The notes under the pieces: generated by a model
The model's input: only the letters and a program-made list of their open reading frames with translations
Database searches by the model: none
What the model was told of the DNA's origin: nothing
Shown here: positions 7,597-45,290 of the stretch, piece by piece
Numbering within the stretch: position 1 is the first letter of the stretch
How the letters are laid out: every line of letters begins with the position of its first letter
Made by a program: the position numbers and the translations under genes
Source: Girardia tigrina
Taxonomy: Eukaryota
DNA: 58,570 nucleotides
Assembly (NCBI GenBank): GCA_001938485.1
Contig: MQRK01172106.1
Coordinates: 1 to 58,570 of the forward strand
Reading direction: 5' to 3'

Positions 7597-7885
7597 CACT
7601 GTGTCCGATGAGGATGATCGGACGTGTCGATAACGTTCGAAGACCCATGGAACTCGTCGGTCACCGGTCGGTGCGCTAGTACTAACCGGCACTGCGATCG
7701 ATTTGCAAAAACTCCCCGTGGAATACTACCACCCGGACTGTTAACGGTACCCCAATCGATCCACACGTGCGATACAGGTGAGCACAACTGGCGGAGTCGT
7801 GTTGATCAGCAGTCCGCCGTCAGGTCGAGTGCGGCGGTATCGAACCGATCTGATCGGTTAATAAAACTTTTCGAGATCGACAACC
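7597..7885 (+). ncRNA. Putative structured ncRNA, island A (unknown family)
   Basis: GC-rich island in AT-rich DNA. Helices GTCCGAT/ATCGGAC (7603/7617), long-range TGTCGAT/ATCGACA (7625/7876), CCGCCG/CGGCGG (7814/7832) and AACCGAT/ATCGGTT. Shares motifs with islands B, C and D. Confidence 0.55.
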
Positions 7886-9810
7886 CGATTAATAACTGTC
7901 ATATTATCAACGAAGCGTGCCGAAGTTCAAAGCAATAACAAAAGTGTAGAAGATGGAGTCGACGAAACTATTATTTCAATTTTTTACTTTTTAGTTTTAT
8001 TACATATTATTTAAGCAATTGTTAATTTTTTTAGAATTAAATGTCCTTTATAATTTGTTTTTTGATATTCGATAATCGCAGCACCACAATAGTAAATTTT
8101 GATTTCTTTCGTTTCAGAAAATATTTTTAAAGAATGATACATTATTTCTATTTTTAACAAATTTAATATTTGTTATTTCATTAATAATTATATCTATTAA
8201 ATTAAAATGGTACAATTAATTTTCTAGATCAGACGGTTGAAATATTTTTTTACATTTTTTTCCATTTTCATAATAATTGAATCTATTCACGAATGGTTTA
8301 ATTTTCTATGCAAAAAGAAAATTCTTATTAATTTTATTATTTTAAAATATAATTTGTGCTTGAGGAAAAAAATTTGTTGGATAATTAATTTTCCAATCTA
8401 TGAAATTTTTATTATCAATTTTATGATTTAATTTGGATTCTGTGTAAATGTATTTTAAAAGAATTTTTCGAAAAAAGTAATAATAAATAATAATAATAAA
8501 TGACATTTTATCATATTTTGATACTACTCGTATTTTCAATGGCAAATTTCAAATAATCTTTCGTGGAAATTGCCAATTAATAGTGCCAATATACATATCC
8601 CTATAATTTTCATCAAAATCAATTTAAATAATCCCATCTCAATAAATCTGAATCCCAAATGCCATAAGCTACATTATTTTTTGGTAATTACTTGTTTCAA
8701 GGGAAGTTTATATTTTCAATCATCCTTCGTTGGGATATTTTCGTTGGCTTTACAATACGAAATCTCTACAACGCGCTCGACATATGTCCATCAAGTTTTC
8801 CTTCCGTAATAATAGTAATGCATTATTTACTTTTCATAATCCATTTGTTCCAATTATTTTAAAAAATTTTTTGGTAAATAAAAGAATGTTAAATATACAT
8901 AACAGTTTTAATTGGAAAATATAAATATTTATTTTTACTATTTTTATTTTTTGTTAATTATAATTATAATTATATTAATAAGAATAATATGATTTTCAAA
9001 ATTATTATTATTATCCCAATTTGAATTGTATCTAGGATAACTCTCCACAAAACTTTCATCTGTTGACATCGAACTTATTTGTTAAGATCTTAGACTGACT
9101 CGTTTTAATATGATTATTCGAACAAAAAATTCCATTTTACACAAATTAATTAATTGTACACGTTCATAACTATTTTATACACTAGAAAAAGACCCGTTGT
9201 TCGATTCACATTGATGGGGGCCCATATCGTAGTAAACCCCCCAAAAAATTTAACTTCCATTCGTCCCGAGTTGCAATTCTATCAAATTGATGTTCCATCA
9301 CGAAAAGCAAATATTATTTGGAAATTTCAAAAATAAATCTTTGTGTATCGATTAAAAAAATATTTGGAAATGTTCAATCAAAGAAACTGAAGGATTCTAT
9401 AAAATCTGCGGCTTATGAAATGCTCGATAATATACCGAATAATTGACGGAAATTCTATTACGTTTTCGATTAATTTATCGACTCTGTGCTTTTAATAATT
9501 AAAGTTTTATTTGTGTATAAAAAAAGAGAAAATTTAAATAAATTTAAAAAAATTAAATAAACAAAAAAATGGACACCAAAATGGCAAAATAAAAAAATAA
9601 TTAAAAGCTGTAATTTTTGATTTGTTTTAATCGATTATTGAGAAAAAAATCGGCGGTTTTCGTAATTTTGCGTACATGATTTATTATGGAAAAAAAATGT
9701 TTAAATTAATCAATTTTATTATGAATTTGGTGGAAATTTGATTTTGTGAAATTGTTCGAAATAATAAAAATTTGGCGTGGTGATTTTTTTTATTTGATTT
9801 GATGTTTTGT

Positions 9811-10416
9811 ATGGCGAATTTCACGAAGAGGAATTATATCAATGTTGGTCGAAATTAAACATCGTTGGTCGAAAAGTCGAAGAGTTTTTCAGTCGTTCTT
9901 GATCATGGTAATGAAATTATCAAACTTGATCCAAAGAATTGCACGTGGTGTGTTGGCGTTGGTGTTGTGCGTTTCGAAAGAGGAGAATATTCGCGATGTA
10001 TTATGGTGTTTAATAAAACCGTTGAAGTCGGACGTGAAAATCGGGCTGATTATAAATTAATCGCCAAAGCCTGTTCAAGAGCGGAGAATGTTCATTTAAA
10101 ATTAGATGATCTAATCAGCATTGTAAAAAAATTAACGATTTGTTCGATTGACATTAACGGAGTGTGGTGGAGTTGCTTTGAAAATTTGGAGAATGAATGC
10201 TTGTCGCAGTTGTATGAAACGGAGGACGGGACTGGAGCGGCGAGCCGCAGAGATCTGGCGATCGAGATGAGCGAGTCAGGGAGCGAGGGTGATGGAAGGG
10301 AGATTACGTTGTGTTTCTCCCTCCCCTGCCCTGGAATCACTGATTTCCCAACCCCGGGACGCCGCCACTACACTGCGCCCGCTCTGTCGCCAACACCCGT
10401 CATATATAACGAGTGA
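9811..10416 (+). pseudogene. Unassigned ORF-like sequence with one in-frame stop
   Basis: ATG at 9811, TAA at 9856-9858, then open to 10416 (183 codons), which is long for this base composition; no recognisable domain. Confidence 0.3.
10221..10402 (+). ncRNA. Putative long rod-like hairpin, island E
   Basis: Nested pairings GACGGG/CCCGTC (10225/10396), GGAGCGG/CCGCTCT, TGGCG/CGCCA, GAGTCAG/CTGATTT and AGGGAGA/TCTCCCT (10297/10316); several pairs work only as G-U on the + strand. Confidence 0.45.
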
Positions 10417-10489
10417 GCTGAATTTTCGTCTTTGAAAGTTTCTGCAGTAATTTTTAAATCACAATTATTATCATTTATTATTTACAGTA

Positions 10490-10940
10490 CAGATAAATCC
10501 GTCTCGATGCAGGCTATGCAGATTAATCTCAACCCTGCTTCTCCACCATTTTGCATTTTATCAGCATATATATGATCATACTGAAATTTGAGCTTGATCG
10601 ACAAATCGTGATTTAGATGCTAACGAAATTTCGCAAATTTAACCTAAATTGATTTTAAGAAATATAATTAGTAAATAAGAGATAGAAATCGTCGTATTCT
10701 CACGAAATTCCTTGTAGGAATAATCGTAATCGGCATTATTCGAATTAGGTTTTGATTTAACAATCTTTACCCGCACGGTCTTTGGTCGATTCCGTCGGCT
10801 TCGAGGCGTCTTTGTGGAGATAATGATTAAACTTATTTATTAAAAAATTAACCTAAACCCTAACCTAAACACTAACCCCAACCCCATCCGAAAGCACGAA
10901 CCTTAACGTTAACTCCTTATCCGAAACGTTAACCTTAACC
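10490..10940. mobile_element. Helitron/Helentron-like non-autonomous repeat, copy 1
   Basis: Homologous to 12168-12240, 12750-12870 and 12890-12925; followed by a degenerate CTAAC/CTAAAC microsatellite (10848-10940). Confidence 0.5.
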
Positions 10941-11764
10941 ACTTGTTGGGTATTAAAATCTTTAAAGTTAAATATTTACTTTTTAAAAACACAAATCGTT
11001 AATCTTTAATCTTTATTCCTTAAATTTTTAATCTGACCCTATTTAATCAGTAAGTTCTTCCAACATAAATATATAATGAATGAACACAAATTCTTTTTAG
11101 AAACTTTATTTTCAACAACACAAAATAACACACAGCTTTATATTGTTCAAATCAATAATATCAATAAACGTATTCAAAAACGGTTAAACGATGCGAGGTT
11201 TTCAGATCACAGTTTATTAACGTCGAAACTAAAAATCTTCTAAGTTGAACGATAACCGTTAAATCAGCAGTCAAAAATGAATTCTTGCTCTCCTATACAG
11301 GATACTGAATTCCAGTTTTAACTTTGATAATTTAAAAAGAAAAGATTTATTAAATAATAAATTTACTTTACTAACGGTTTCTTCTTTGATTATATCAACA
11401 GTAGTAATTTTTGTGTGAATATGACTGAATTAATTATTGTTTATATACTAGTTTTAAATAACCTTGAAAATTACTTTGCTAAACAATTCTAAAAATATTT
11501 ACAAATATTCGATAAATTTGATTAAAATAAATATTATGTGAATCGAAAATTATCATCAACAAAAGCAGAAAAACATTTTGAAAAATTAATTATGATAATA
11601 ATAAAAACATAATGGACAGTTGTTTAAATAAAATGAAAGAAGTCGAAAATAAGATAAACTGTCAAAATGTGTACATGTAATAATACATTAAGGTTTTTCT
11701 TGTAAAAAAGGGATTTCTCATCATTTTTCATCACATGGGATGCTTATGATTTATTGGCCTTGCT

Positions 11765-12035
11765 GAGTCAAAACGGCCACTCGCTCGCGGCTCCTGAGCC
11801 GATACGGACACACTCCTCTTGTATCCCACCACACTCTATGCATTCGGTACTAACCCGGCGCCGTGTCGCTTCACAGGGTCTCCAGCACATGAATGACCCT
11901 CGGTCGATTATTAACTGCTGACTCCGGGTTGATGTCGAATTCGACGACACATCGGCTGCAACCGGCCGTTTCATGGTCATCACTCTACCCCGTAACCCGA
12001 CGGTGATCTCCATCACCAACTGAAACGGGTCTTTC
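11765..12035 (+). ncRNA. Putative structured ncRNA, island B (unknown family)
   Basis: Nested helices AAACGGCC/GGCCGTTT (11771/11964), AGCCGAT/ATCGGCT (11797/11951), AACCCGG/CCGGGTT (11852/11924), AGGGTC/GACCCT; 3' domain ACCCG/CGGGT enclosing GGTGAT/ATCACC. Confidence 0.55.
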
Positions 12036-12117
12036 AAACCTAAGGAACCTAACAGACTCTGCGAAATTAAGTGGTTATGGATGCGTCTATCTCAGATCTC
12101 CGTCTACACCACACCTA

Positions 12118-13030
12118 TTAACCTTAATCCTAACCTTATATAAATGAAATGTTGATATTATTATTATAACGAAAATTTGCAACTTTATACTAAATTGATT
12201 TTTAGCAATATAATTAGGAACTAAGTGATAGAAATCGTCCTTTGTCAATTTAATTTATGTTATTAGTATTTGTGGTGTTGAAAAAAAACTATTAAAATTT
12301 TTTGTTTAAAAAAACTAAAAAATTAATTAAAATGTGTAAAAAATTCAATTTATAATTTCTTTTTGAAATAAATGTGTGACGATTCGATTTTGTTTTTGTC
12401 ACATTGAAATTTTGATGAGTTATATTTCAAACCACACTGTGTGGCAGCGGACTCGAGTGGCCAGATCACATGCGCCATCACCACACACAATTTGGCGACG
12501 CATGGTGGATCCCCACGACCTCACCAACCACGCACTCGAGTAACGTGTCGACGAACCGAACGAACAACCCACCACATAGAGTCTTATCGGCGGTCACAGC
12601 AACGAAGACGAGGTACGGGAAGCCGCAGCGTTTCGAACTAAACACCGTTACTTAGCGGTACTCCGACCGGCACCGGCCGAGCGACGATTTCCCGCATGAG
12701 AGGCCTTCACAGCCCCATCTGGAGGCCAGTACTATAGCATTTTTAAAAATATTTTCACGAAATGCCTTGTAGGAATCATCCTATTCGGAATTATTCGATT
12801 TCGGTGTTGATTTAATAATTTAACGACGTGCATGGTTTTCGGTCAATATCATCGGTTTTTTAGCGTCTTTTGGCAAAGGTAATGTACCAACAGACCCGTC
12901 TCGATGCGGGCTATACAGATTTACGCACTTACATGGATTCCCTCCGGGTACCCCGAAATTTTCCATTTTGATCATAGCGTGACTGATAAACAAACAAACA
13001 CACTTTTTAGACAAATATATTATATATTTT
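12118..13030. mobile_element. Helitron/Helentron-like repeat, copy 2, interrupted by a ~509-bp insertion
   Basis: Matches copy 1 on both sides of 12241-12749; ends with AAACAAACAAACAC and a TA-rich tail, as seen in Helitron-derived non-autonomous repeats. Confidence 0.5.
12432..12740 (+). ncRNA. Putative structured ncRNA, island C (unknown family, possibly 3'-truncated)
   Basis: Helices ACTCGAGTG/CACTCGAGT, ATGCG/CGCAT, CGGGAA/TTCCCG, ACCGTTA/TAGCGGT and GGCCTTCA/TGGAGGCC (G-U pairs on +); C/A-rich loops. Confidence 0.55.
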
Positions 13031-13310
13031 TAGAAATTTTTTATTTTAATACATTGGTATAAAAATTTTACTTAATAGAAACTTATTTTAAGGATTTTCA
13101 TTTTTGAAAACTTTCAATTGATCATATTAATAATTTAATCTAAAATGTTGCTAAAAAATTATTTGAATGATTTTTATTTTAAAAACTTTTATTTAATCTA
13201 TATATAAGAGATAATAAGAAGACGAAGCGTTTCTAGATCATAATCCCATCATAAGGAGATTAAACTAATTAATGTGTATTAAACTAAGACATTATACGGG
13301 ACTATGCAAT

Positions 13311-13692
13311 AATTAAAAAAAAATTTTATCAATAAATCATTGAATTAAAATGAATTTACATCATTTTTCCTGAAAATTGAGCAAAGGTTCATCAAACGTG
13401 GTCAATAACATTACCACAAACCACACATTTTTTTTTGGAAAATTTTAAAGAAAATAAAAAGAGGTATTTATAAGAAAAATGAAATATATTTGCCAAACAA
13501 AGTGTCCATTCGACCATGCCACTGATTTTTTAAGTCTAAATTTTATTGACTTACTAAACTTTGGCTGTAGGCCATACAAAAGCCCTCCATATCACTCTGA
13601 ATCAATTAAAAAAACATTTTATCAATAAATCATTGAATTAAAATGAATTTACATCATTTTTCCTGAAAATTGAGCAGAAGTTCATCAAACGT
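13311..13692 (+). repeat. Local ~88-bp direct duplication
   Basis: 13311-13399 and 13605-13692 are nearly identical (ATTTTATCAATAAATCATTGAATTAAAATGAATTTACATCATTTTTCCTGAAAATTGAGCA...). Confidence 0.9.
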
Positions 13693-14820
13693 AATCAAAA
13701 CCATAATGTGGAAATTTCGATGCGCATCTTGGAAGAGTTCTATTTTAACTAAAATCAATTCTTCGAAGACAACGTAAAATGTCTGCGGCAGATTTAATAG
13801 GACGGCAAATCATGGCCTCGATTCTATGCTCAAACGAGTTCATTTGTGGAAAAACATTTTATACAATAATCAAAGAGCTAAAATAATTGAATAAAAAAGA
13901 AGAAATACTTTTATTATAGAATGCAACAGTTCCAAAGTACCTCAGTTAGTTCACGCAGACCAAATCAAGTTCTAATATATAAAGAAGAGGAAGAAGAAAA
14001 AGTATACGACGAAGAAAGTGATGAACGGAGTACAAGGAATTCAGAAAATCAAACTTTAAGAAGTGAAAGAAACTAGAACGAACTACAAATCAATTACAAG
14101 ACTAAGGAAAATAAATTTGCATATATATAATTATTATAAAACGTATAACAATGAGAAGTTGTTTAAATATGTGATAAACACGCACAGTTTAATAAATAAA
14201 TCATAATAGGCTTAATGACTTATCATCAGTTTTAAAAATTTAGTTTATATCTTAACAAAATTAATAATTTAAACATTTAAATATATTACATTGAAATTTA
14301 AAATGTAAATCATGCTCGAACAATTACTCATCACGTACATCCAAATTACCAACTTTCCACGCGGGTCGCGGAAACACATTTCCAAATACCAAATTCAACA
14401 CACCAATTTTAAAATATTCCCCACAATCATAAAAGAAAAATGCGAATTTAAGTTATTTATTATAATTTTCCATTCCTTAAATTTATTTTATGTCTCATTG
14501 TGAGAAAAATTCTATTTTGTATTATTTATTTATTTTTAAGATTTATATAATTAAAATAAAAACTGATAATGTCAGGATTTTGCTTTTAATGAAGGAAATT
14601 TACATCTAACACTTCTGTTAAGTGATATTTGATTTATATTTAATTAGAATTAAGATAACTGAATAGAAATAAAAATGTATTTTTATTTTTTTCTACTTTC
14701 AGGATTACCAGAAAATAATTATTTTATTTTTTATTACATTTTAATCTTCTTGTTCATCATTTGAGAATAAAAGATTTTATTGCTTTTTTTCCTTTTTTAT
14801 GGAAATAATTTTAAATAACT

Positions 14821-15145
14821 TGAAGCGACGGCCAACGTTTGTGCAGAGAGGCACCGGTGGAAAAGAGTGACCAACCGCGACGACGTCAACCAGTAATTCC
14901 ACATATATAGAGCTCGTCGGTCGGCGGATCGCTTCGGATCGGTACCGCAGCCGATTCGCACCAGTTCCCCTTCATGCATCGCCAAATGTGGAGCGATGGG
15001 TACCGCTCGAAACAGTGAGCAGTTTACTCTATCCAGTCACTCAACATTGGATAGTCTCGTCGGTGGGGTAATGTGTACCAGCAGTGCACCGCAGGTCGAA
15101 ACGCGGCGGTATTGAGCTCAGTCGGATCTATTCAATCCGTCGTTT
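14821..15145 (+). ncRNA. Putative structured ncRNA, island D (unknown family)
   Basis: Ends pair (AAGCGACGG 14823 / CCGTCGTTT 15137, one G-U); internal CGGTACC/GGTACCG, CATCGC/GCGATG, GCTC/GAGC, CTATCCAGT/ATTGGATAG and CCGC/GCGG. Confidence 0.55.
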
Positions 15146-15549
15146 AATAGTATAATTCGGCAAAGTCAGCATTTTAATGATTAAAAATCAGTGAAAGAGA
15201 TAGAACAAATAAGAGAACGTACAACTAATAATTCTTTATTTTTCTTATTCTCACGACGATACAGCGATTCCAAATATCACCATATTTTATTTATTACATT
15301 TTAAAAAAAGTTTTTCTTTTATTAGTTTTTTTCTTCATTTATTTGGATGATTTTTTCTCAGTTAGTTTTATGATGTTCTTTCGAGCACCACATCACTGAT
15401 TTCCCCAACTTTTAAGATAAAATATATTAAACGAAGCGATAATTTAATCTATAAAAATATAATAATATAACTTAAAATTCATTCTAATGAACAATAGTGA
15501 GGCGGTAAAACTCAGTAAGACAATTTATGAGCATAACCTCTTAAAAATC

Positions 15550-17112
15550 ATCAATAATCCCTTTGATAATTATTGAAATGTTATTATATTTTACTCAACA
15601 ACTAATTTCTGAACTTTTCCAAGAATTTCCATAATGAAGGAAATTCATAACCCAAATTCATATGTATTCGGACACGTAAAATAATTTTTATTAAAAATTT
15701 TAAATTATAAATAATAAATACTAAATACTGGTATTATAGATGAACTAATTTAATATTTTACGATATTCTATTTACAATTCTAAAATAATTTGTAGAAATT
15801 AAATAAAAAATTTATATAATAAAAATTTTATTCGCGTTTTACAATTTGTTCTCTAATTCAAAAGAATTCGGATACTTAATAAAAATTATAATATAAATAT
15901 AGACAATAAATTATTTAAAATTCAATATAGATTATTTGTAAAAACATATATAGTTATTATTTTTTAAATATTTGAGTCTATTAAATTTTCGTTTTTTTAT
16001 AAAAAAATGGTTCGTGTAAAAAAGATGGATACTGAAATCCGTGAGAAAATATCTGTCATGTATGTTAAAGGAAATTCAATAAGGGAAATTTCACAAATTT
16101 TAGATACAAGAAAAGCGATGGTGTAATATAGCATTAACAAAGCTAAATATCGTAAGAATGACTCATTTCCAAAGAAATCTGAACTACCACAGTTGAATTC
16201 CGCTACTGATAACAGGTGTTTGAAGAGATTAATTCCTCAATATCGTCGTGCTACTGTTCAAGTAATCAAAGAGAAATGGAGTATGCAAACAGACTTTTGT
16301 TCTTCTCCGTCAACTTGTCTACGTTGAATACATGAATTAAATTATTCATTCTATAAGGTAAGATTTTCTTAATGATATATAATCATTAAGTAACATTTTT
16401 TAGGCCAAAACAAACCATTTTTGACATCTATTTATAAGAAAAAGATACTTAAATGGGCTTATAATTGGAATAAAGTTATTTTTAGACGTATTTCGTTTTG
16501 AATTGCGCATGGGCCAAAATGAAAAATTGGTCTTAAGTACTGAGTCCTTATTATCTGACTGATTACACCGAACTCTGAAATTTTCTGAGAGTGAATTGAA
16601 TTGGGGCTGTATGACAAGCGAAGTACTTGGCAGTCTTCATTTTATAGATGACACAATTAACGTCACAAAATATACCGAAATATTAACAGAGTCTCATTTC
16701 ATCTATTACACAATATTTAGACAATGAAAATTTCATTTTATAACAAGATGAATCATATTGTCTTACATCTATGTTTACAAAAACTTGGATGATGAAAGAC
16801 AGTATTTCCTTCTAGAAAAAGCCTTCAAAAAGCCCAGATTAAAGTCATATAAAGAATGTTTGAGCTATTATGAAAAAGAATAATAAAATAAAATTGATTG
16901 GAAGAACAAACTTTTAGCGACATGGAATTCTAATTCAATAAATAGAAGAATGGAAGATAAAAGCAACGGAAGATGTTACAAGATTATAAATAGTATGTGT
17001 CGAATTCTTTTGAATTCAGAATGCATATGAATTTGGGTAGTTTATAGGCTTGTTGAACAACAAAAACATCAATGTAACTCCTTTAAACAATATCAAATCG
17101 AGGGTTCTGATA
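15550..17112 (+). mobile_element. Decayed Tc1-family transposon with intron-containing transposase
   Basis: ATG at 16007 starts an HTH-like MVRVKKMDTEIREKISVMYVKGNSIREISQIL; WGCMTSEVLGSLHFIDDTIN, QD and SPD motifs follow; inverted repeats ACCCAAATTCATATG (15650) and CATATGAATTTGGGT (~17024). Outer limits approximate. Confidence 0.85.
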
Positions 17113-18431
17113 TAATAAACAAATGATTTTAACATTTAATGAATGTTTTATGTGTAACTTAGTACAAATCAACCTCTACATTTTTGCTTTTAGTAAAGGA
17201 TTCGAAAGAGCAAGCCAAATCTATTTCTTGTGCACATTCAATTGCATTTATATACATTTTTATTGTAAATTAAGCATCATATTTCTTTTTATTTTTTCTG
17301 GTCATTATGACATTAACAATAGGTTACGCTTTTATTTAATATACCATATATTGTGTTTAGTTCATTGAATAGGGAGGGACCGCCCTTAAGTAATCACTTG
17401 AATATTCCTGCTACTTCTGCGTTTATATTTGTAATTTTGTCTGGTAAAGTATCATTATAGAACAGAAAGTCTACTTTGAACGTGACATTTTGTATTTAGA
17501 AGATAACTGGAGTAAAATATTATGAATTGTGAGATATTTATTCACCTATATTTCGAGCTATGAAAGTGAAAGCTTCGTTCACTAGATAGATTTAACATGT
17601 ACGATATTACTTGTATAGTTAAAATGGAGTCTTCGTTTGTTTGGATTCTGTAGTTTTGGTTATATACTTTATAATGGTAAGGCGTTTTATAATATCTTTA
17701 TTATTCCAAATAACATTTTATTCAAATTTGATTTCTGAAAGAAGTAGACTCCCAGAATCACTAAGTTTTTCTTTAGCAATGTTTTTCTTCACATTATACA
17801 TCACTGCTTTCTGAAGTAGATTTACACTCCTCCGAAAATAAAACATTCAAATTTTTTGAAGCCAGTAATGATCTACCTATGTTTAAAGTATCAAAATTAC
17901 TGCTAAACATTTATGGTTAAAACTATGAGAAATATTTTCACATCTCAACATTTTATTTAGTTAAAACTGAGAATTTATTAATATTCATTTCCCACTTATT
18001 TAAATTTAATTTTTTAAAAAATATAAATCCAGATTTAATGAGTAGATGTATTACTCATTCTTTTTTTGTAAGAGGTGTTTGTAAAATCATTTTCAGAAAT
18101 CATTTCTACTCAAATTATATATACATTATAAACAATTTTCAAACAAAATTTTTAACTATTTTCTTAATAATCGATTCGCTGATCTCTATTTTTCCAATAA
18201 TTCTTTTAAAATTTTAATCAAATCAAAACAGTATTTAATGTTTCAATTTTTAAATTTTGAATGAAAATATTTATGACAATTATTATTTTAACATATTGTG
18301 ACAACGAATAACAAATCTATAAAATTTATTTTTCACTAACAAATACTTTTAAATAGATATTATTTAAACAAATAATTATCTATATTTTTTCATGTTAAAT
18401 ATTTCATTTAATAAATAAATTCAACATGTAA

Positions 18432-20640
18432 CACTCCCCCCAGATTCTTCGTCACAAGAATCTATATCTACTACATACTCGTTCAAATAATTCGGTTTTC
18501 GTCTTTCTCTTTTGGGTCTGTTGCTGATTCCCTATTCACTTTGCATAATACTCGAGGCTGATTCGTTGTTATTTTCCAACATGTAATCCGAGTAAGAGTT
18601 TCGCGGCAGGTCTGGTTGTCTTGGTCGAATATCTGCTATATGCCGTGGATAGCAAAAACCATCACAATTTATTAAGTACTTTCTTTGATCCAATTTTCTA
18701 ACGACAACACCTCTTGTCCATTGCTTTGTACATGGCATATTATTTTCAGGCTTTACCCAGACCAACTGTTGCTCTACGAAGTCTGTCTTTACCTTATTGT
18801 AAACCGGCTGCTTTTCAATTCTTTCGATTATCTCCAAACCGACTGGAATGTACTTGTAAAGTGCTGAACTAGGTGCCTCCTTTCCGTCGGACGGTGTATT
18901 GTTATACCACCATAAGGCTTCCATGATACTAATATTCGATCGAGACGCAATTCTCTTGATTGTCTTATGATTTCTCTCTATTATTCCGTTGCAATTTGAT
19001 CGATTAATAGCACGGTATAGGACATGTACATTCTACTTTTTCATCAACTTGCTGAATTCGGATGAATGAAATGTCGTATAATTGTCAATAATCAACTCCC
19101 TTGGAGATACCCGCTCGCAGAACAAATTTGAAAACTCTGTAACAATCGACTTGACATCCTCAGCTTTGATTAGTTTCCCTACTGCAAATTGAGAGGGTCC
19201 ACAATCAATGATACTTAAGAATTTTTGTTGATCAAATTTTGTGACATCCGCTGCAGGTCTTGTCCAGTTTTCATTGACAGCTAATTTTCCAGTTTCCCAT
19301 TTTATTGGCGACGGATCAATAGATTGGCGACTTTGACACTTCGAGATCAAATCCTTTATATCCGTATTTGACACATTTATTTCCAACTTATCGCACAGAT
19401 ATCGCATTCTCTTTGCACCTAAATGACATCTGTCATGAAGTTTCTGTAGTTTGAATAGGTCATCTGTTACAGACAAAAGGCAACTGCTTCGTTTTAATTG
19501 ATTGGATATTCTTGTCAGTTCATCAGCCTTGTTGTCTTCACTATTAACAAACTCAATTTTCAAAGTTATTTCGTATTCCTGGAACAACTCCTTAATCATT
19601 GACAATCGGCGCTTTATCAAAAGCTCGGAAGAGGCTTTCGTATGTAATTTATTTCGCTCTGATAGTGCCTCAGTTATCCAAAAACAACTGATTTGTTATC
19701 TGATTTTATTACAACATTCGTTAGTCCCCATTTAATACACAGATTTAGACCCTTTACAACTGCTTCTAGTTCTGCTACGTTTATGTCCCTAGAATCGTCA
19801 GTTTTCCTTAACCATGATGCATCTTCTATAATATTTCCTTTAACTTCCAATGCTGCCCCAATGGCTATCGAACTGGCATCACACCATATGATACCGTCTT
19901 TACAATCATCAATACTCCATATTCCTGTATAAGGATCTTCCTCCTTAACTTTTTTCAAAACAAATTTGATTTTCTCAAATAATTCGACATCTATTTTCTC
20001 ATCCCATTTTCCTTCACTGAGCCTTTTCATGTAGGAGCATGATGGACGTAGCCAACCAGCAACAATGTGGATTTCTACTAATTGGCCACACAGCGAATAT
20101 AACTCGCGACGCAATATTGATTTGGCAACTATCTCGTCCTTGAAATGATTATCTCTCATCCATCTCACCGAATTCTTATCTTTAAAGACTTTAACTCCCA
20201 ACATTCGCACCTCTTTATCCATTGAGAGATCTTCTGGTTTTTTGCATTTAAGACTAAATTTCTCGGACAGCATTCTAATTTCAACAATTGTGATTGTAGA
20301 TTCGTCAACGTAAATGTCATCGATGTACGAGTCGGTGTTTTCACGTGCTCTAAGATCAAAATTTAAAATCCACTTGACAATTTCAGTCATAATGGTTGGA
20401 GCGATATTTAAACCAAAGCCCATCATGGTAAGAGCGTACTTTTTCCATTAATGATGCATGATTGATAACGCAACATTTCCTTGTGAACGCGAATCTACCT
20501 ATACGCCTCTGATAAATCAAGCATGGAAAATCTTGATCCTTTTTGTCGCCAGGTGCGAAGTCTTTCCAAACATATATCTGCTGAGCCACTGTACACGTCT
20601 ACATAATTGTTTAATTTCCTAAAATCAAAAATCGGTCTTT
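18432..20640 (-). mobile_element. Gypsy/Ty3-type LTR retrotransposon pol (RT-RNase H-integrase), frameshifted, with polypurine tract
   Basis: RPIFDFRKLN, FGLNIAP and YIDD (RT); WCDAS, AELEA and NKADELTR (RNase H); H-H-C zinc-finger remnant and DDE core (integrase); GGGGGGAG tract followed by TGTT at ~18441-18430. Confidence 0.9.
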
Positions 20641-23585
20641 GATTTGAAAAGAAACGCTCATTTGAATGCTTTCCATGTGAAATTGCGTTTTAAATGCTTT
20701 TATTGGTATCTGCTGACACAATGCGTATGTTTTTTTATATTTATCTTGCCAGACAATATATGAATAGCAAGTTGCGTTTAAAGAAACATACAAAATGCTA
20801 GCCGACTTTATCCTTGTTAACTCTCGTCAACAGGCCTCAAAGACAGTCGATGATACACGCTCGCCAGTTCGAATTGGTAGATCTAGCTTTTGAATCAAAT
20901 CGAGCCTAATGTGTCAAAGTGAAAAAAATTCCTCCAAAGATTTAAACTCAAACAAAAACCGGAAATTACTATTATACTGATCATACTTTAAGTTATGTTG
21001 TCATTAAGACTGAATAAATCAAATTGCGAATTTTGTTTCTTAATCAGTATAGTGTTCTAGCACTTTTTCAAAAAGAATAACGTTTTAATAAATGATGACA
21101 AAATGCCTCCCCTAAAATTCCGACAACCTCTCCATTCATTACCTTGCCACACTCTAAAGTAAGAGCACAACATAAAATTTACAAAAAAATATCAAACAAA
21201 ACAACATTCAAAAATATTCTTCATAGTCCTTTCAATATGTATTCCTGATTGATTCCTTTATTTGTTATATATATAATGGTTTTTTGTTCATTAATGTGTA
21301 AAATAATAAAATAATTTTCAAGACATGATTATTTTATGAGGTAAAAGCCATTGAATTTTATATTGAATTTAACAGCAGTGCTTCTATCAAAAATAAAATG
21401 TATTCTAAGATTAAGTGGAAAATAAATTTCTTTCCATGTTCACTCTACCTGTATATGGAAAGCACTCAAGATAATAATTCATAATAATTCATATCAAATA
21501 TGGGGTGGGCGCCAAAGACACTCAAAAATTGAATACATATGTTATTAAGTAATTTTGTTACAGGTAAAATAAAGGACAAAAAAGAAAACAAAAATATTAT
21601 GGTTATGGTTTTTAATTGAATATGTATGAATTTTTACCTTATATTCCCAACAATTTATTTAGGAAATATTTATTAAGTCAAACATTAAATCTTTATTTCT
21701 TTTTAGTCACTTTTATAATTATATAAAAAATACAAAGCTTATAGAAAAATCAAATACCCATTTTTGTTAAGAGCATTGTGACAATTATTATTAGAACATT
21801 TATTAGTATAACATTTAGAGTCATTACAACTCTCGAAGGTTCTTTCAGTTTGACATCATTCTAATTGATTTTATTTCTATTTTTATAATAATAACTATAA
21901 GTATTCGATCAATTTTTCTAAATCTTTCTAAAATATTTAATATATTCTAATTTTTAAAAATAGTTATTAGATTAATAATTTTAACCATTTTAATATAAGA
22001 ACTTGTGAGATTCTAGAAGAAATAAAATGAGACTTGCAAATTTTATTTTCAAAAATAACTCTGATCTCGACTTTTGACGATTTAAACAAACGACATTTTA
22101 TTTATCCCACAGAACTCTAAATAAAAATATTTTATCAAATTCTAAAATGAATTTAAATTTAAATTTCATTATTTTTTATGTCCATTAAAATACTTTTCTT
22201 TTTTTTACAATATGAAACTTGATTTTAATTGTTCATAGTCTGATAAGTTTAAATTTTTGAAATTATCATTTCGTTATTTTTATTCTAATTAGGTTCGAAT
22301 AGTCAATCATCATAAATACAAAATAAAATACCAATTTCCATCTGGGTGGGAGAATCATCATTCTAAGTTCAACATACTCAAATCAACACACTAGATTGAC
22401 ATACAATTTAAATTATTTCTCATAATTTTGAATATTTTTATCGAGTTTACGTTTTATATCAGACTTTCTACTTCTTTGAGCTTATGTTCAAACTATTTGG
22501 TAGTTTATTTCATATCATTTCAGGAAAAATAATGTTGAAGGATTTAATAACATAATAAATAATAAAAATTATGATGATTTTAAAATCCTTAAATTATTCT
22601 TTTTGATTAACACTTAAGGTCATAACCATCCAAATTCTCGATACTGAAGGTCGGTCATTTCATGATAATAAGTACATAATTTATTGGTAAAAAAATTTTC
22701 ACAAACGTATCTTCATCATAATATTCTATTCTTTTGAATTTTACCAGAATTTATTTTTTTCCTCGAGGAAGTTTAAATTTTTGCAATTGTCCTTATGTAC
22801 TTTAATATATAAGCGTGCCTTTTTATTTTGGTGGACTGATGTAAATTCCGTTTTTAGCTTTTACTTGAAGGGACTTTACTCATAACTGAAAATTAGATTT
22901 TTCAAAAGATTACTTACTAAATAATTGCTCTTGAAACTCTTCTAAAGAATAATATCAAAAATAATTGACAGAACTGGTATTCTTAATGTGAATCAAAGCT
23001 CATTATACCTTAAAATCATTTTTATTATACTTATTATATTTCAAATATTTATGATAAGTACTGTGAGGAAAATTCTGTATGTTGTAAGTTTGTTGTTTGT
23101 ATGCTGTTTAGATTGGATACTCTCCCACTCAGATGGGATTGGTATGTTATAGATTAATTATTCAAATCTAATGAGATTAATTTATTAGATTAATGTTTAA
23201 ATACTAATTAATTAAAAAGTTTTCTAATTATTAATTTTTATAATATCTTTTTGTAAAACGATTTTAACTTATTGAATTTAAAATAATTTTTTAAAAAATG
23301 TTTATTTTAATTTACTAAATGTATATTTATCCAATAAAATTTTGAGAAATTAAGTTAATATTATTTATATCTAATTAATTAATCAAGGATTTGAATATAT
23401 ATGCAAAAAAATATATTAATCAAGAACGATGCTTCCCACAGAGAGGGCTACTGAAAATGAGTGTGTTAGTGTTGTTAATAATGTTTTCATGCAAATTGTG
23501 ATGTTGCTAATAAGTACATTTATTTTAACTTCAGTCAGTTCAATCGGATAAACTATACTTTCTGCTGGTATATTTACACGGGTGG

Positions 23586-23630
<45 letters not shown>

Positions 23631-24048
23631 NNNNNNNNNNNNNNNNNNNNNNNNNNNNNNNNNNNNNNNNNNNNNNNNNNNNNNNNNNNNNNNNNNNNNN
23701 NNNNNNNNNNNNNNNNNNNNNNNNNNNNNNNNNNNNNNNNNNNNNNNNNNNNNNNNNNNNNNNNNNNNNNNNNNNNNNNNNNNNNNNNNNNNNNNNNNNN
23801 NNNNNNNNNNNNNNNNNNNNNNNNNNNNNNNNNNNNNNNNNNNNNNNNNNNNNNNNNNNNNNNNNNNNNNNNNNNNNNNNNNNNNNNNNNNNNNNNNNNN
23901 NNNNNNNNNNNNNNNNNNNNNNNNNNNNNNNNNNNNNNNNNNNNNNNNNNNNNNNNNNNNNNNNNNNNNNNNNNNNNNNNNNNNNNNNNNNNNNNNNNNN
24001 NNNNNNNNNNNNNNNNNNNNNNNNNNNNNNNNNNNNNNNNNNNNNNNN

Positions 24049-24689: not shown

Positions 24690-25843
24690 GAATGCTGCTG
24701 AAATCCCGGCCAGATGCTGTCCCAAGCAGCCCATTGGAATTACTTTCATGCATTATTTTCTAAGGCAATGATATATTTCCAAACGTGCGGATTACTTTGC
24801 AAATTATGCTGACAATCTCTGCGTCAATTGCAAGCTACGAGCGTTCATTTAGCAAACTAAAACTCATTATCTTATTTGAGAGCTTCAATGGGACAGGAGC
24901 GTTTGTCTGACTTGATCTTGTTAAGTATAGCTGGTCGAAACAATTAACTTTGATGATGTCATTGAAAACTTTGCAAGTGCAAAATCACGAAAAGTTATTT
25001 TTTAATAAAATGTGACATTCGCTACAGATTTTTTTTAACTTTTTAACATTACAAGTAAATTTTTGAATAGCATACTGATGAGTGTTCTTATGAACGGGTT
25101 TTCGTCGTCAATAAGAATCTGGTCTTATTTTCATGCACTTAAACAAATTTTTGTAAAAATAACGATTTTTATAAAAAAAATTAATCAAATAAAATACAAC
25201 TAGTGTAATTAAACTTTTGTTTTAAGAGATAAAATTTATAAAAATTATTAAACAGTGAGTCATTAAAATGATTATGTTTGTTATTTTCATATAGAACTAT
25301 GTAAATTTATTAATTTTTTACTTCTTCGTTTTTTTATATTTGACGATTCATTATTTATAGCTTTTGCACTTCTTATCCTATACATATGAAGTCATAGTGT
25401 ATAAAAGTAAAGATCAAGACTCTTGATATTTTGAGACAAAATAATAATAATATATTCAAAACAGCAAGTTTTTCTCTTTCAATTGAAAATTTTAATGTAA
25501 GCAACAGTATTATAAAACGAAATTTATGAAACAAAACAGATTCTCTGTTAGAAAAAGTTTGAGTGTAGGATAGGAAGATAACCGTCCAGTTGAAGAGACA
25601 AGATCTGTTATTAAAAACTGTTTTGAAGTTTTAAAACTAAAATCAACAAATATTGATCCAGAAATTTTTTATAATACGCAAGGTCTTATTTTTAGAAAAA
25701 AATTACTCCTAAAAACAGTGTCTCTTCGAATACAGACTCAATCTTATTTTCGAGAAAACCGGTGACATGAATGACATGAATTTTTGGTGGGGGCGCCTAC
25801 AGGTCTTGCTACCCCGGGCGCCAGACACCCTCGGACGCCATTA
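24690..25843 (+). mobile_element. hAT transposon 3' remnant
   Basis: FPNVRITLQIMLTISASIASYERSFSKLK...LRASMGQERLSDL...VIENFASAKSRK* (hAT C-terminal dimerisation domain, ~24775-25005); GC-rich hAT-like terminus at ~25788-25843. Confidence 0.8.
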
Positions 25844-28399: not shown

Positions 28400-28798
28400 T
28401 ATTTAGAATCAATATACATTATTCGTATTAACAATATCAATATGATTTTTCATACATTTATTAACATCACACTCAGAATTGTCATGACAACAATTATTCA
28501 AAAGGCTTTCGCTATTCGACATTTTTCTTGATTAATATATTTCTGAATTCATACTTATTTTTCACTAAATGAAAAAGATTTATTAATAATTATTAATTAT
28601 AGAGATTCTAATTGGTTAAAATTCAATCTAAACATTTTATAAAAAGTACATATTAAACTAATATATTAAAATTATAAATTACATTAAAAATTAAATATTA
28701 CATTCGAAAATTATTTTAAATCTATTTATTTTAAAATTAAATTATTTTTAATTATTAGGAATCAAAGAAAATACCAATCAGCCACCTGGTAGGAGAGG
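28400..28798 (+). repeat. ~390-bp dispersed repeat, second copy at ~56865-57245
   Basis: Colinear high-identity match, e.g. TTGTCATGACAACAAT and GATTCTAATTGGTTAAAATT...AATCTAAACATTTTATAAAAAGTA. Confidence 0.85.
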
Positions 28799-30344: not shown

Positions 30345-30891
30345 TCAAACGATTGGGGTTTCTCCGAGATATCCGCAATTCCTAAACGGATTTATGTTGG
30401 TAGAATTGAGCTGGGCTGTTGGGGGATTGTCGTAACAATGATTTAACTGATTCTCATAATAATTCCCATTTGGTGGAGGAGGAAAGAAATCTTTTGGATT
30501 ATTCGACGGGAAATAGTTGTGCTGATTGCAGATCAATCCACAATGTTGATCTTGGACTTGATGATCCTCGGCACATGTGTCATATGTGGCGTCTTCGTCG
30601 GTATAGTTCGATTGGGAGAAATATGAAGGAGTCATTTGTAGAAAATTATTCATAGTTGTTTGTGGTGCGAGAGAAGAAGAAGTTTGCCAGTCGTCATTCA
30701 CAGAATTTGAATGAGCTGATGTGTTACAATCGTTACTTTGGTCTTCTTCTTCATCATCATCATCGTCTTCTTCGTTTTCTGATTTCTCGGCTTCTTCGTC
30801 TTCTTCTAAAAGACTTGTAGAATCATCATTTTGACCTGATCTTGTCATTGATTCATATTTGTTATAGTCCCGAGTAGAATTACCCGACAAT
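30345..30891 (-). CDS. Terminal coding exon of host gene (acidic/Pro-rich tail)
   Basis: Long open frame ending GYLGETPIV*; AG acceptor at 30893-30892; contains a poly-E/D tract and DFFPPPP. Confidence 0.85.
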
Positions 30892-30948
30892 CTTAATGCA
30901 TGTCAAATATTAAAAAGTATATTTATTATCGTAACAAAATATACATAC

Positions 30949-31207
30949 ATAGCACTACTGCTGGAGCCATTTCCATTCGATATGTGGCTAGAAACCATTG
31001 ACATTAAATCTAAAGGATATCCATTTGTTCCCACAGGAGCAGTTCCATTTCCATTGGATCCTGGTAGATAAGGGTCATCGGATAAGTGCGTCATAGATAG
31101 CATATCATGAGGTGGTGGCAGAGCAAAACTGGATGCAATAGAAATAGTGTCAGAATGGCGTCCCATTGAAACCATATTGAATGGTGTGCATGAATAATCT
31201 ATGTACC
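30949..31207 (-). CDS. Penultimate coding exon of host gene
   Basis: TAG acceptor at 31210-31208 and GTATGT donor at 30948; a 57-nt intron joins it in frame (..SSA-I-LSGN..) to the last exon. Confidence 0.85.
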
Positions 31208-31409
31208 CTATTATACATGAAAACATGAATCAATTATATCAAAGAACAGTAATCAAAGAAATATACTCAATTAATGCTTTAAGACAATATTTTTGAAAAA
31301 TTTAAATAATATGCAGATGTTAAAATTCCTTAAAATTTTATTATTGAAATAATTTTGAAATATTTTTTTCAAGAAATTAAAAAATACCGTTTTACAACTT
31401 AATATTTTA

Positions 31410-31484: not shown

Positions 31485-31625
31485 TTATGAAGAAACTTTT
31501 AACAAAGTTGATGAGTCACTTGATTGAACATTAATTGCTGGATTAACCGATTTAATTATCAATGCCTCACACGAGACTCTTTCCCAATAATTTTTAAAAT
31601 TGACCCATAATACTTTGAAACTATT
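31485..31625 (-). mobile_element. Penelope-like element ORF C-terminal remnant
   Basis: NYWERVSCEALIIKSVNPAINVQ is nearly the same as the GIY-YIG C-terminus at 44720-44830. Confidence 0.8.
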
Positions 31626-34049
31626 TATTTCAACAGTAGTTTTACAGTTTTTTATGTTCAGTAATCTACATATTGTTAAAAAAAATACTATTTTGATATT
31701 TTGCATTTTGGCTTAAATTGTCAAAAAATGGTATTGGGTAAATAAAATACAATTCATTTATTTAACCATATATTGTCCACTTTAATTAACTTTTCATGTG
31801 ATTTTTTTTCAGATAATTGAAAGATTCAAATTATTATGGAACTTACCATCTTTTTTAAAGAACATCATTTTGCAGTTATACAGAGCATCAAAATTTCTAC
31901 CATTAAGTTACTATTTCAAGGATCTAAACAAATGGAATTCTAACAATGTAATATCATAGGTGAATATGGAGGATGGATTAGAACTTCTCAAATCATGTAG
32001 TCATGCGTTGTCCCCTCTGTTTATTCTAACTAGTTCCGGCCGGTCTTCAATATCTGCTTTAGCTGGTCTAACTCAACTTCTTAAAATTAATTGCTTTGTT
32101 CGAAGGAATGCACTCAAAATAAAGTTATAATTTCTAATAATTTTTAATCTTCCTGGAATGTAAACCAAATTTTTGAGTGATTAATGGAAAGGAAGTAAGG
32201 TTCTTTGCTTCAAATTGTTAAACATTACCCATTTTTAATTATCTATGACAATTCTCTTAAAAATAATTCGTCGTTATTTGGTTAGTAACGAACTTATTAG
32301 GGTGACTTTAGCATTTGTCATTAGTTAGATTTAAATATTTGCCATGAAAAAATTTGAAGTTCTCACACGTTACCTTCACTATCGTCAAGTACATCAGAAA
32401 TCTTTTCGTTGCTTGATCTGTACTTTACAATTACCCATAAGTTGAATTTTCGATAACTTAGTTTTTTTTCATTTTCGAAGAAATTTTAGTGACACTTATC
32501 AAAACTTTCAGAATAAGTATATTTTTAGGTAGAAATGTCTTTTCCACCATCATGTGAAAAAAATGCGATTTTATTTATATGTAACGATGTTGCTTATGGT
32601 CTCTAGCATGGAATTAATAACATTATCACTAAAAGTCCTTGACTATTGCTTGTAGAAGAGCCATGCCGAATACAGGTGTACTGATCAACACCCTCCAGGT
32701 AGGGTGTATTGGAACTTGACCAAAGCGCAGTACAAGTATTTTGATAAGTCTAAACATTCCGCCAAAGACTATTAGAAATATTGCGATAGCGTGCTCGATA
32801 TCCAATGTCAAATATTCTTCGGTGCAATTGGCATTTCATAGAGATGGAAGATTCCCAGGGATCCATATACTTAAACGGAACGAGATGGTATCCATGGACT
32901 CCATACTGACCATGGAAGAACCAGACAGTATGGAGGAGCCTAAAATGGAAACAGGTGCAGAAGATTTCAATCCGGCAGTCCTCGATGAGTTACTCAAATC
33001 ATACGTACATAGAATTGAGCAACTTGACGATGAGAACAAGTACCCATCCTCTAATGAAGAAATATCAGAACATGAGGAATAGACTGTAAGGTATATAAGA
33101 AGGCGGAAACGATCCCCCAATCTAGTGGTGCCGGGCAGGCTGCACAAAAGGAACCCCGGTAAAAACCATGACACAGCTCACCAGAAATGTGAATTTATAT
33201 AGGACTAAATGGATACTTTTTCCCACTGATAAAAAAAACAGTGTGTTTTGACGCCCTATTTGAAAACAAACTTTTTAAGGAATTATTACTGGCACAAAAT
33301 TATTCCCTTTGGTTATTATGATGAATTGTCTCAGGAAACTAACATTGAACATTAAATTATTCAGAAAACACCGCTTTGAAGTTCGTATGGATAAGATAAA
33401 TCAGGATAAAAATTTTAAAAATATTTTATCATTAGATTCCACTAAACAGTATGACGAAACTGGTCTTGAAAACATGGTAAATGTTGTCTCTATCAGCCCA
33501 TTCATTATCTTCGTATTATAATGATCAATGGAGCCAGCCAACATAAAGATAAGTTCAAAGTAATACGAGTATATCAGCCGGTTGATACATTAAGACACTT
33601 TTCTACTATTTGCCGCTGTCGTTGGTCTAAAGACCAGAAATAGGAATCCATCCCACTCGATTCTTCGACAAATTCCTACTTAAGTCCTGAATATCGGTTT
33701 TAAATTAAATTATTTTATTAAACTTTTTCCATTAATTTACAAATTATTTTTGAAAGAAAATAATTTCATCTCGTAATTTTTTAAATCATTCGTTTAGTTT
33801 GATATGGAAAGGGAAAACAACATTCGCAAATTACTAAATGAAATATCAATGTCACATTTAATTATCACAAATGACATATTTTTACAAATATATTCAACAT
33901 TTGTCTTGATATGGTTAGCCGCTTTTAAAGGAATTCCAACACTTGTATTTCGAAGTGTAATATTTTCAATACGAAAACTTGCATTATTGGTAGAAATGAA
34001 CAAAAGGTTTCGTTATTTATGTTTAATGGTAGCAAAATAAAAACTGACA

Positions 34050-37173: not shown

Positions 37174-37975
37174 CTTCTTCTTCTTTTTAACCTTAGCCGT
37201 TGGGCCTTGGGTGCACCCGATTATAAACAAGCCTTCGCCACATCTCTCTATTTGTAGCCTTTTTTCTCAGACATTTCATACTCAATCCAATCCATTCTTT
37301 TAAATCATCTGTCCATTGCCACTTTGATCTTCCTCGTGGTCTTTCTCCTTCCACTCTTCCTTCAATCATAACCTTTGCTAGTGCTTGTTTTCTAATTTCA
37401 TTTCCATAGAATTTCAGCTTCCTTCTCTTAGTGGTCTCTTCTATTGATTCCGGTCTTTCACTTAGTACTTCTGTCACTCTCCTGCAGACAAAGTCGTTTG
37501 TCTTCTTTTCTTTCCACGGAATGTTCAGCATTCTCCAGTAGCACTTCATTTCAAGCGCTTTAAGTCTATCCATGCTCTTCTGATTTATTGTCAAACTCTC
37601 GCATCCATAGATTGTTGCCCAGACAACAGCCTTAGTGATCTTAAATCTACTCTAGAGATGGATTTCTTTGAGATTAAAAAATGATCTAAGCTTAATCATT
37701 GCACTAAATTGCAGTACCAATTCGGCTTCTGATTTCTTCTTCGCTTCCCCCATTCTCTGTGATAGTAGAGCCTTAGTATTTGAAATTCTTAACTTGTTCC
37801 AGCTTCTCTCCTTCAATGTCGATTTCCAGTTTAATCTCTAAACCATTATTTTGCTTTTTTGTCTCTTGATTTCCATTCCGAATTCGTTGTGATGCTTTGT
37901 TCAATCTATTCGTAAGTTTCTGAATCTCTGCCTCATCTTTGTCGATTAGCTCTATGTCGTCAGTATACATAATAC
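37174..37975 (-). mobile_element. 5'-truncated RTE-like LINE
   Basis: YTDD, LEQVKNFKY(LG), YGCESLT and MIEGRVEGERPRGRSKWQWTDDL motifs; short (GAA)n-type 3' tail at ~37174-37185. Confidence 0.9.
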
Positions 37976-40019: not shown

Positions 40020-40490
40020 ATAATTTATCGCTTATGTTTGTTGTTACAAAGTAAACAATACTGAATCACTTGACTCAAATTGGTAAAATGAAAAATTTGG
40101 ATAAGTGGATTCCACATGAGTTGAATGAAAAGCAAAAACAAAAACGTTTGGATACTTGCTTGATAGATATAAATATGTGATAAAATGTCGACCCAATATG
40201 ATAATCGTAAACGTTGAGCAAGCTGGGTGCGCACGAATGAAGAACCAAAACACAGTCCAAAACACAATACGAAATAAATTCAATTCCGAGGATGATGAAA
40301 ATGGTTTTCCAAGAAATTATAGATTCTTGCCCAACATATTTTAATTCAAATGGCATCAACAAGCTGCTACTGAAATGGCAAAAGTGTGTCGATAATATGG
40401 GTACATACTTTGATGAATGACATAAATATTTGTATTATATCAATAAACTTTAACTTTAGTTCTACAAATTTCATACTTGACGACCTAATA
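40020..40490 (+). mobile_element. Internally deleted mariner remnant
   Basis: HLTQIGKMKNLDKWIPHELNEKQKQKRL (WVPHEL motif); C-terminal KWQKCVDN..TYFDE*; TIR-like end TTGACGACCTAATA. Confidence 0.85.
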
Positions 40491-44719: not shown

Positions 44720-45290
44720 CTAATCAAAAATTCTCAATAAGCTGGTTGAGACTGCCGATTGAACATTGATTTTAGGGCAACGTGACCTAATTAACAATGC
44801 TTCACACGACACTCTCTCCCAATAACTATCAAAATGCTTACACAGAATTTTGAAATTATCAAAATTAACATCACATTTACATTTTATCTTATGTTCTGCA
44901 ATATTACTCTTACTCTCTTTTCGACCATGTTCTTGAATTCGTTTACAGAGATGACGGGCTGTCTCTCCAATGTATGTGGCGTCGCACCCATTACATTTAT
45001 ATTCATAAATAATATCAGAACAAAGTGTTAAAGGTGTAATAGATTTATTACTAAACATATTTTGAATTTTATGAGATCGTGATATAATTTTTAAATTTAA
45101 TTCAATGTTAGTTTCTTTTAACAATGCATTTGTAAAGTTTTTAAATCCTTCATAATAAGGTACAATTAAACAATATTTAGGCATATTATTCATATCTAAT
45201 GATCCTTCGATTTCTTTATTAGATCCATCAGGAGAAGCCAAACTCTGATTTGTCGAAAAATCTTTCAAAAGTATTTTATCTACTGTTTCC
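44720..45290 (-). mobile_element. Penelope-like element, GIY-YIG endonuclease region (5'-truncated)
   Basis: IIYEYKCNGCDATYIGETARHLCKRIQEH...SNIAEH...EALLI...PKIN is the canonical PLE GIY-YIG with CxxC. Confidence 0.92.

Follow-up and report, generated by a model that had tools for sequence, protein, structure and literature searches.

Three GC-rich islands of ~300 nt, named A, C and D, on contig MQRK01172106.1 of Girardia tigrina (assembly GCA_001938485.1) form an unclassified family of structurally constrained copies that probably represents an undescribed small RNA. They are clustered inside 7.6 kb of the 58,570-nt stretch analyzed here (the window). We tentatively favor a low-copy, lineage-specific family of non-coding RNA (ncRNA) genes, whose products would depend on their shape and likely serve as ribonucleoprotein (RNP) scaffolds. 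A preliminary description of the same DNA had singled out four GC-rich islands as related RNA genes, all read on the plus strand. The four islands lie where it had placed them and contain 53–57% GC, against 28% for the whole window. The helices it had quoted can all be found in the sequence, including the pairing of the ends in A (7625–31/7876–82) and D (14823–31/15137–45). The four islands are:

7597–7890, plus strand: copy A, with paired ends, an optional hairpin gone (19-nt deletion) and a T4 run at 7868–7871
11765–12040, no strand assigned: island B, GC-rich and possibly structured
12429–12737, minus strand: copy C, gap-free relative to D over 12436–12671
14821–15158, plus strand: copy D, with a 9-bp terminal helix (14823–31/15137–45) and a cUUCGg loop (14932–14937)

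By inspection, copy D carries an extra segment of ~45 nt in its 5' arm. A fifth GC island (10141–10457) was unrelated to A–D in pairwise alignment.

Homology and strand of the islands

Local alignment based on plain identity joins A and D only (score 52, against 22±3 in shuffles). Transition-aware scoring recovers this pair with z 12.8 (A+/D+) and relates both copies to the minus strand of C (A+/C−, z 6.4; D+/C−, z 4.9), a relationship that plain-identity alignment does not reveal, whereas the plus strand of C matched none of the other islands with the same scoring (z ≤1.4). Leave-one-out hidden Markov model (HMM) profiles, in which two copies are used to find the third, retrieved D with an E-value of 1e-10, A with 5e-10 and C(−) with 3e-4. 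The C−/D+ alignment spans 236 nt at 46% identity with 0 gaps, and the best 200-nt diagonal between these copies holds 94 matches, against 71±2.5 in shuffles. Pairwise identity among A, C and D ranges from 46 to 53%, with Kimura two-parameter distances of 0.8–1.1. Judging from these alignments, A(+), C(−) and D(+) are homologous, old paralogues. No fourth member was found within the 58-kb window by either a covariance model or the HMM profiles.

The family of four is therefore one of three, as profile E-values unite A, C and D while B is only weakly similar to them, and its supposed common plus strand does not hold for C. The short motifs said to be shared by the islands reflect real homology between A and D, whereas those linking B, C+ and A occur at chance level: the five pairs other than A/D share 4 9-mers where 2.3 are expected (P 0.22), and the GTAC..CCGGC motif of C+ is the reverse complement of the opposite arm of the same hairpin.

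A fold common to the three copies

Folding energy alone provides no support for a structured RNA. Compared with dinucleotide shuffles, the single islands gave z-scores of −1.95, −1.34, −1.09 and −0.50 on the plus strand and of +0.44, −1.85, +0.69 and −1.07 on the minus strand. Plus-strand folding is thus slightly better than in the shuffled controls that the preliminary description had proposed as a check, but unremarkable (z −1.95 to −0.50). The signal comes from comparing the copies, for which we used shuffles that preserve the gap and conservation patterns of the alignment. For the A/C/D core, the consensus energy amounts to −39.0 kcal/mol, compared with −24.4±3.7 in shuffles (z −3.9), and the consensus fold of C and D reaches z −3.7 on the family strand (A+, C−, D+) versus +0.2 on the opposite strand. 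Helices of at least 4 bp common to the three copies number 20 on the family strand, 1 on the opposite strand and 5±3 in shuffles. Compensatory changes are seen as well: in the C/D register, a 9-bp helix (D 15046–54/15128–36; C 12541–33/12459–51) has undergone four double compensatory changes along with a single wobble change. A shared helix as long as 9 bp arises in 0.7% of column shuffles (P about 0.007), and none of at least 6 bp exists on the opposite strand. A model of 47 pairs has 86% of its cells paired and both sides changed in 14 of its pairs (31–45% and 2–4 when the partners are slid), a score that is partly circular because the model was derived from the same three sequences; the consensus-energy shuffle test is the fairer of the two. 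The elements of the model are:

Hairpin I (helices 1–2): D 14921–14954 (+); A 7668–7701 (+); C 12666–12633 (−)
Arm II (helices 3–4): D 14996–15032 (+); C 12591–12555 (−); A 7743–7760
Arm III (helices 5–7): 15046–15136 (+), with a 9-bp closing helix (15046–54/15128–36) and hairpins H1 and H2
Long hairpin H1 of arm III: D 15060–15095; A 7788–7823; C 12527–12492
Short hairpin H2 of arm III, with a GGYG loop: D 15102–15111 (+)

Hairpin I consists of a 5-bp stem, a 4-nt 3' bulge, an 8-bp stem and a 4-nt loop, and its helices 1 and 2 are paired in 100% and 79% of cells. By inspection, it is preceded by a GYCGGTC-like 7-nt unit present in two copies in A (7656–7669), three in C (12682–12665, −) and one in D (14916–14922). 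Arm II is a 5-bp stem around an optional 4-bp hairpin (15005–15020), deleted in A. In copy D, the 9-bp helix of arm III adjoins the terminal helix. Drawn by hand, a GGAA/UUCC-type helix in a long 5' arm could form in the three copies (8/8, 6/7 and 5/5 pairs). A UCCC/GGYGRRG pseudoknot pairs in 3/3 copies but excludes better-supported helices. The comparative evidence gives good support to a conserved structure of RNA type, whereas the structural details of the fold are not settled.

Length constraint and lack of coding signal

Pairs of repeats in the window show 0.12 gap openings per mismatch. C and D differ by 127 mismatches, for which ~15 gaps would be expected, and have 0. In copy A, the single long deletion (19 nt) takes out one entire hairpin. 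The absence of gaps between C and D does not reflect coding constraint, since identity is the same at the three codon phases (46, 47 and 46%) and stops interrupt every frame. No common open frame and no codon-position divergence pattern emerged from a test for protein-coding exons, in line with the earlier remark that the islands share no open reading frame, and a protein search with the island reading frames, using a tool that sees only proteins 0.55–1.75 times the query length, was empty. GC content is kept at ~2 times the background despite ~1 substitution per site, with no AT-ward decay, and transitions dominate the differences among copies. As far as sequence comparison can tell, such indel suppression and kept GC are not how neutral repeats in the window behave.

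These data bear on the idea that the islands are DNA-level elements or plain old repeats, such as enhancer-like sequences, hairpins of single-stranded DNA or GC-rich transposon cargo, that yield no functional RNA. Weak single-sequence folding, the dominance of transitions and a neighborhood made of a repeat nest with a captured STIP1 fragment are what such elements could look like. Strand-specific, G-U-tolerant pairing, double compensatory changes, and the lack of indels and preserved GC at ~1 substitution per site, unlike in the local neutral repeats, make this improbable. The proposal that the islands are paralogous RNA genes which keep structure and GC content is thus borne out for A, C and D by their compensatory changes, few indels and strand-specific fold. 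For B it is unproven, the strand given to C is wrong, and the word gene goes beyond these data.

Flanks, movement and possible promoter signals

Copy C, together with ~190 nt of its 3' flank, interrupts a repeat of which an intact copy lies at 10621–10813:

12167–12239, plus strand: left half of the split repeat, 86% identical to 10621–10693
12240–12749, minus strand: 510-nt insertion made of copy C and ~190 nt of 3' flank, its 5' junction ~10 nt before the GC-rich head
12750–12870, plus strand: right half of the split repeat, 76% identical to 10695–10813

The two halves are contiguous to within one base. Since C with its flank lies within a split repeat, the unit can move. No target-site duplication and no poly(A) or simple-repeat tail were found at the insertion. 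A CACCACA motif following a T-rich tract occurs 150–230 nt 3' of each copy (P about 0.006):

8082–8088, plus strand: CACCACA in the flank of A
12277–12271, minus strand: CACCACA in the flank of C
15386–15392, plus strand: CACCACA in the flank of D

The flanks of A and D align just before this motif. These two observations point to a duplicated unit of ~500 nt, even if the similarity between the tails of A and C is, by alignment score alone, not significant relative to AT-rich controls. [quoted passage not shown] It overlaps a helix strand and consequently is weak evidence for a promoter. A T5 run closes C+, and a T4 run closes B−. With transcription of the opposite strand, the shared flank could be an upstream promoter region, against which the comparative fold argues.

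The main rival of an ncRNA gene family is a mobile RNA similar to short interspersed nuclear elements (SINEs). The islands would then be heads of a lineage of non-autonomous retroposons, each from a different subfamily and followed by an AT-rich tail, with a fold selected for its own transcription and for capture of the reverse transcriptase of a long interspersed nuclear element (LINE). The C insertion, which takes in the tail and begins ~10 nt ahead of the head, the B-box-like 9-mer in C, the tail motif common to the copies, and the reverse-transcriptase and GIY-YIG elements in the window can all be accommodated by such a lineage. The islands also resemble 7SL RNA and Alu-type or other SINE heads: they are ~300 nt long and structured, their ends pair, an internal promoter is conceivable and the inserted copy meets the junction with its 5' end. 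Unlike them, they have no SRP helix-8 motif and no Rfam match to SRP, tRNA or 5S RNA, and there is no head of tRNA, 5S or 7SL origin. Poly(A), target-site duplications and AT-ward decay are lacking, no near-identical copies were found in the window or in scanned metagenomes, and the copies are clustered rather than dispersed, with no sign of a high copy number. We consider a SINE-like origin conceivable, though on the whole unlikely.

Comparison with known RNAs

Searches against Rfam 15 returned no family, either at the gathering threshold for the whole region or at E ≤10 for single islands; the best E-value, 0.48, came from a short match to a box C/D small nucleolar RNA (snoRNA) model on the opposite strand of D. 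ARAGORN and scans for hallmark motifs were equally negative, so that the lack of any match to a known RNA in the preliminary description is upheld. The hallmark scans covered signal recognition particle (SRP) RNA, RNase P/MRP, telomerase RNA, small nuclear RNAs (snRNAs) and ribozymes. ARAGORN detected no tRNA, and a tRNA-derived SINE head is not indicated either, the B-box 9-mer being present in C− only and no A box being conserved. The SRP helix-8 loop (CAGG, GNRA hairpin, AGCA) is absent from A+, C− and D+, its two words being found in A and D but in reversed order. None of these strands has the CR-I of RNase P/MRP (GNAANNUC with bulged U) pairing with CR-V adjacent to the 3' P1 strand. A telomerase template of at least 8 nt (TTAGGG or TTAGG; the host repeat may be another) is also absent from A+, C− and D+. 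For 7SK, neither the characteristic 5' hairpin, in which GAUC motifs pair, nor the 3' LARP7 hairpin with U-run was found, and Rfam was negative for it. A GAUC..GAUCU pair, which we take to be a 7SK-like word, occurs near the 3' end of A and C only. The family strand has neither an Sm site, U1/U2/U6 words, and C/D or H/ACA boxes, nor hammerhead, hepatitis delta virus (HDV)-like, twister, pistol or hairpin ribozyme cores; a relaxed HDV descriptor gave weak, non-conserved matches only. HDV-like, hammerhead, SRP, RNase P/MRP, 7SK and telomerase readings were rejected as their hallmarks are absent or not conserved across copies. The same holds for group I intron, ITS2 and microRNA precursor readings, compared by eye.

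It is very doubtful that the copies are highly diverged paralogues of SRP, 7SK, RNase P/MRP or telomerase RNA that escaped the Rfam models. Their size and paired ends would fit, as would the GAUC..GAUCU pair, and in some invertebrates such housekeeping RNAs are difficult to detect (PMC2770079). The three-way junction of arm III, with its closing helix, long hairpin and adjacent short hairpin, superficially resembles telomerase CR4/5, a likeness in outline only. In arm III the short hairpin is a stem of 3 bp topped by a GGYG tetraloop, while P6.1 of telomerase RNA has a 4-bp stem and a 5-nt loop (PMC4993307). Furthermore, the template of telomerase RNA corresponds to 1.5–2 telomere repeats (PMC4993307), and neither a template of 1.5 repeats nor an H/ACA end is present here. 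Against diverged housekeeping RNAs stand also the absence of Rfam matches even at E ≤10 on single islands, the missing hallmarks listed above, and the position of the GAUC pair near the 3' end and its absence from D.

The least probable explanation is that the copies are integrated forms of a circular RNA akin to viroids or retrozymes, or of an untranslated region from a virus; a self-cleaving motif might then have gone unrecognized. The size and GC content of the copies are viroid-like, their composition looks foreign and one of them is inserted in a repeat. As with metazoan retrozymes of the non-long terminal repeat (non-LTR) type, they would be mobile structured RNAs of ~300 nt in an invertebrate genome. 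Animal retrozymes, however, are tandem, bear a hammerhead and have <50% GC (PMC7229834), whereas A, C and D contain none of the ribozyme cores sought, are collinear rather than permuted, are not tandem and exceed 50% GC. No viral or phage relative was found.

The nearest analogue in kind is RUF6 of Plasmodium falciparum, a multi-copy GC-rich ncRNA family in an AT-rich genome for which a Pol III-type internal promoter has been proposed (PMC6974570). Both families are lineage-specific, non-coding and conspicuous by their GC content in an AT-rich genome. The 15 members of RUF6 are highly similar and all possess A and B boxes, whereas identity among A, C and D is 46–53%, only one of them has a full B box and an A box is not conserved. 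The two families have no sequence relation and the comparison is an analogy only.

Relatives and copy number

Pattern scans of viral, metagenome and prokaryotic contigs, collections that are poor in animal genomes, yielded either nothing or chance matches, one of which reads as a bacterial coding region. BLAST of D against phages and of C against plasmids was empty or trivial, and none of 59 fetched loci scored with the covariance model. Near-identical copies were not found in the window, and metagenome scans for them were empty or gave chance matches. By contrast, repeats 89–95% identical to those of the window occur in JGI sample 3300013315 and in two ENA assemblies, as short repeat contigs only, so that environmental data include this organism or a near relative. 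Since the public collections hold few animal genomes, a blank there says little about animals.

A proposed shape-dependent RNA

In the reading we favor, A+, C− and D+ would give an RNA of ~290–340 nt with a closed multi-branched shape, paired ends and three arms extending from the terminal stem. The 5' arm would be long, irregular and capped by hairpin I; the second would be short, its hairpin being optional; and the 3' arm would contain a two-hairpin junction. Such an RNA would act by its shape, as an RNP scaffold. Roles as guide, template or mRNA are unlikely because helices are kept, no reading frame exists and the longest run identical in the three copies is 7 nt, mostly within a helix. 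Copies may have spread as a ~500-nt unit, i.e., the structured head and an AT-rich 3' flank, through local duplication and occasional insertion elsewhere. The promoter would probably be internal and of Pol III type, which would explain how the relocated copy C escaped decay despite the loss of its 5' flank. The comparisons establish homology, strand, length constraint, shared helices and the insertion of C, whereas transcription, the polymerase, the partners, the RNP function and a benefit to the host are what we infer under this reading.

Several observations weigh against it. The structural evidence rests on n=3 sequences from one genome, too few to fix a fold; the structure conservation index is only 0.54–0.59; and, in addition to the circularity of the 47-pair score, the A/C/D alignment also reaches z −2.9 on the opposite strand. 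Pairs including A are marginal in the consensus-energy test (z −1.7). Copy A breaks the 9-bp helix in register, for which 7739–7747 is a possible substitute (8/9 pairs, by inspection), and mutually exclusive partners compete both in arm III and for the UCCC strand. No A box, terminator or upstream element is conserved across A, C and D, and copy C sits within an insertion. The argument for a low copy number is weak as well: the A/D motif is absent from the scanned metagenomes even though a JGI sample contains repeats of this organism at 89–94%, but that sample may lie outside the collection.

The presence of mutually exclusive conserved pairings also underlies a further, speculative and rather improbable proposal, in which the trio would be a class of ~300-nt animal RNA with an activity of its own, catalytic or conformation-switching, that promotes its own copying and has no known ribozyme core. 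Island B would in that case be a second structured RNA of no known class.

Island B

The minus strand of B has a 10-bp terminal helix followed by the T4 run and several crisp hairpins, with a folding z of −1.85. In pairwise alignment to A or to D, B scores a z of about 3, its profile z is 1.7, and neither the covariance model nor any HMM retrieved it as a family member. B− contains a CR-I-like word without the bulged U. Its membership in the family is, by sequence, unproven, and it may be a second, unrelated structured RNA.

Neighborhood in the window

The window (28% GC, N runs at 240–440 and 23631–24048) is crowded with decayed transposons and shows no CpG depletion (observed/expected 1.15). 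A decayed STIP1/HOP TPR fragment (9859–10120) with animal-type relatives is fused to unrelated GC-rich sequence (9859–10416, +). A copy 89–93% identical with another left flank exists in a JGI contig, from which we conclude that the piece is multi-copy and captured. The 12-mer CACTGATTTCCC, possibly a transposon end, occurs just twice in the window, after this piece (10338) and immediately behind the flank motif of D (15394). A nest of related non-coding repeats (10480–10940, 12040–12240 and 12750–13010), which we presume to be non-autonomous Helitron-type elements, flanks the STIP1 piece, B and C and has degenerate telomere-like (TAACCC-type) runs.

A broken retroelement of the LTR type, in which DUF7047 and RVT_3/RNase H domains were recognized, lies at 18430–20800 (−); copies 94–95% identical occur in JGI and ENA metagenomes, and relatives at 40–45% in Octopus, Watersipora and others. 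Two related GIY-YIG endonuclease fragments (44720–45268, −, and 31522–31665) are presumably Penelope-like. Other fossils are, on our assumption, related to RTE-type LINEs (37196–37990, −), Tc1/mariner transposases (16000–17050, 39700–40420, 45570–46090 and 54200–55150, one with a weak HTH_Tnp_Tc3_2 match) and the C-terminus of hAT (24700–25000).

A spliced host gene probably has exons at 30345–31229 (−) and 46856–47161 (−), which show low-complexity stretches of proline-rich and acidic type; one of them, searched alone, gave no homologue. GC-rich repeats that carry CCAAT and X-box-like (GTTGCCATGGTAAC-type) words lie at 1–650 and 58528–58561, around an N run. Their end at 587–622 is found again, in inverted orientation, at the opposite end of the window, and a large element may have these as its terminal repeats. 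An AT-rich direct repeat of 380 bp (28416–28797 and 56860–57242, 87% identity) and a short array of CGTCGA and A-run units (58350–58450) complete the picture.

Significance

In animal genomes, new families of large structured RNAs seldom come to light, and annotation that relies on Rfam cannot see those confined to one lineage. With ~1 substitution per site, the three paralogues already indicate which helices matter. Should A, C and D encode a host RNA, they would reveal a new RNP; should they be SINE heads, their parentage would be none of those known (tRNA, 5S, 7SL, snRNA).

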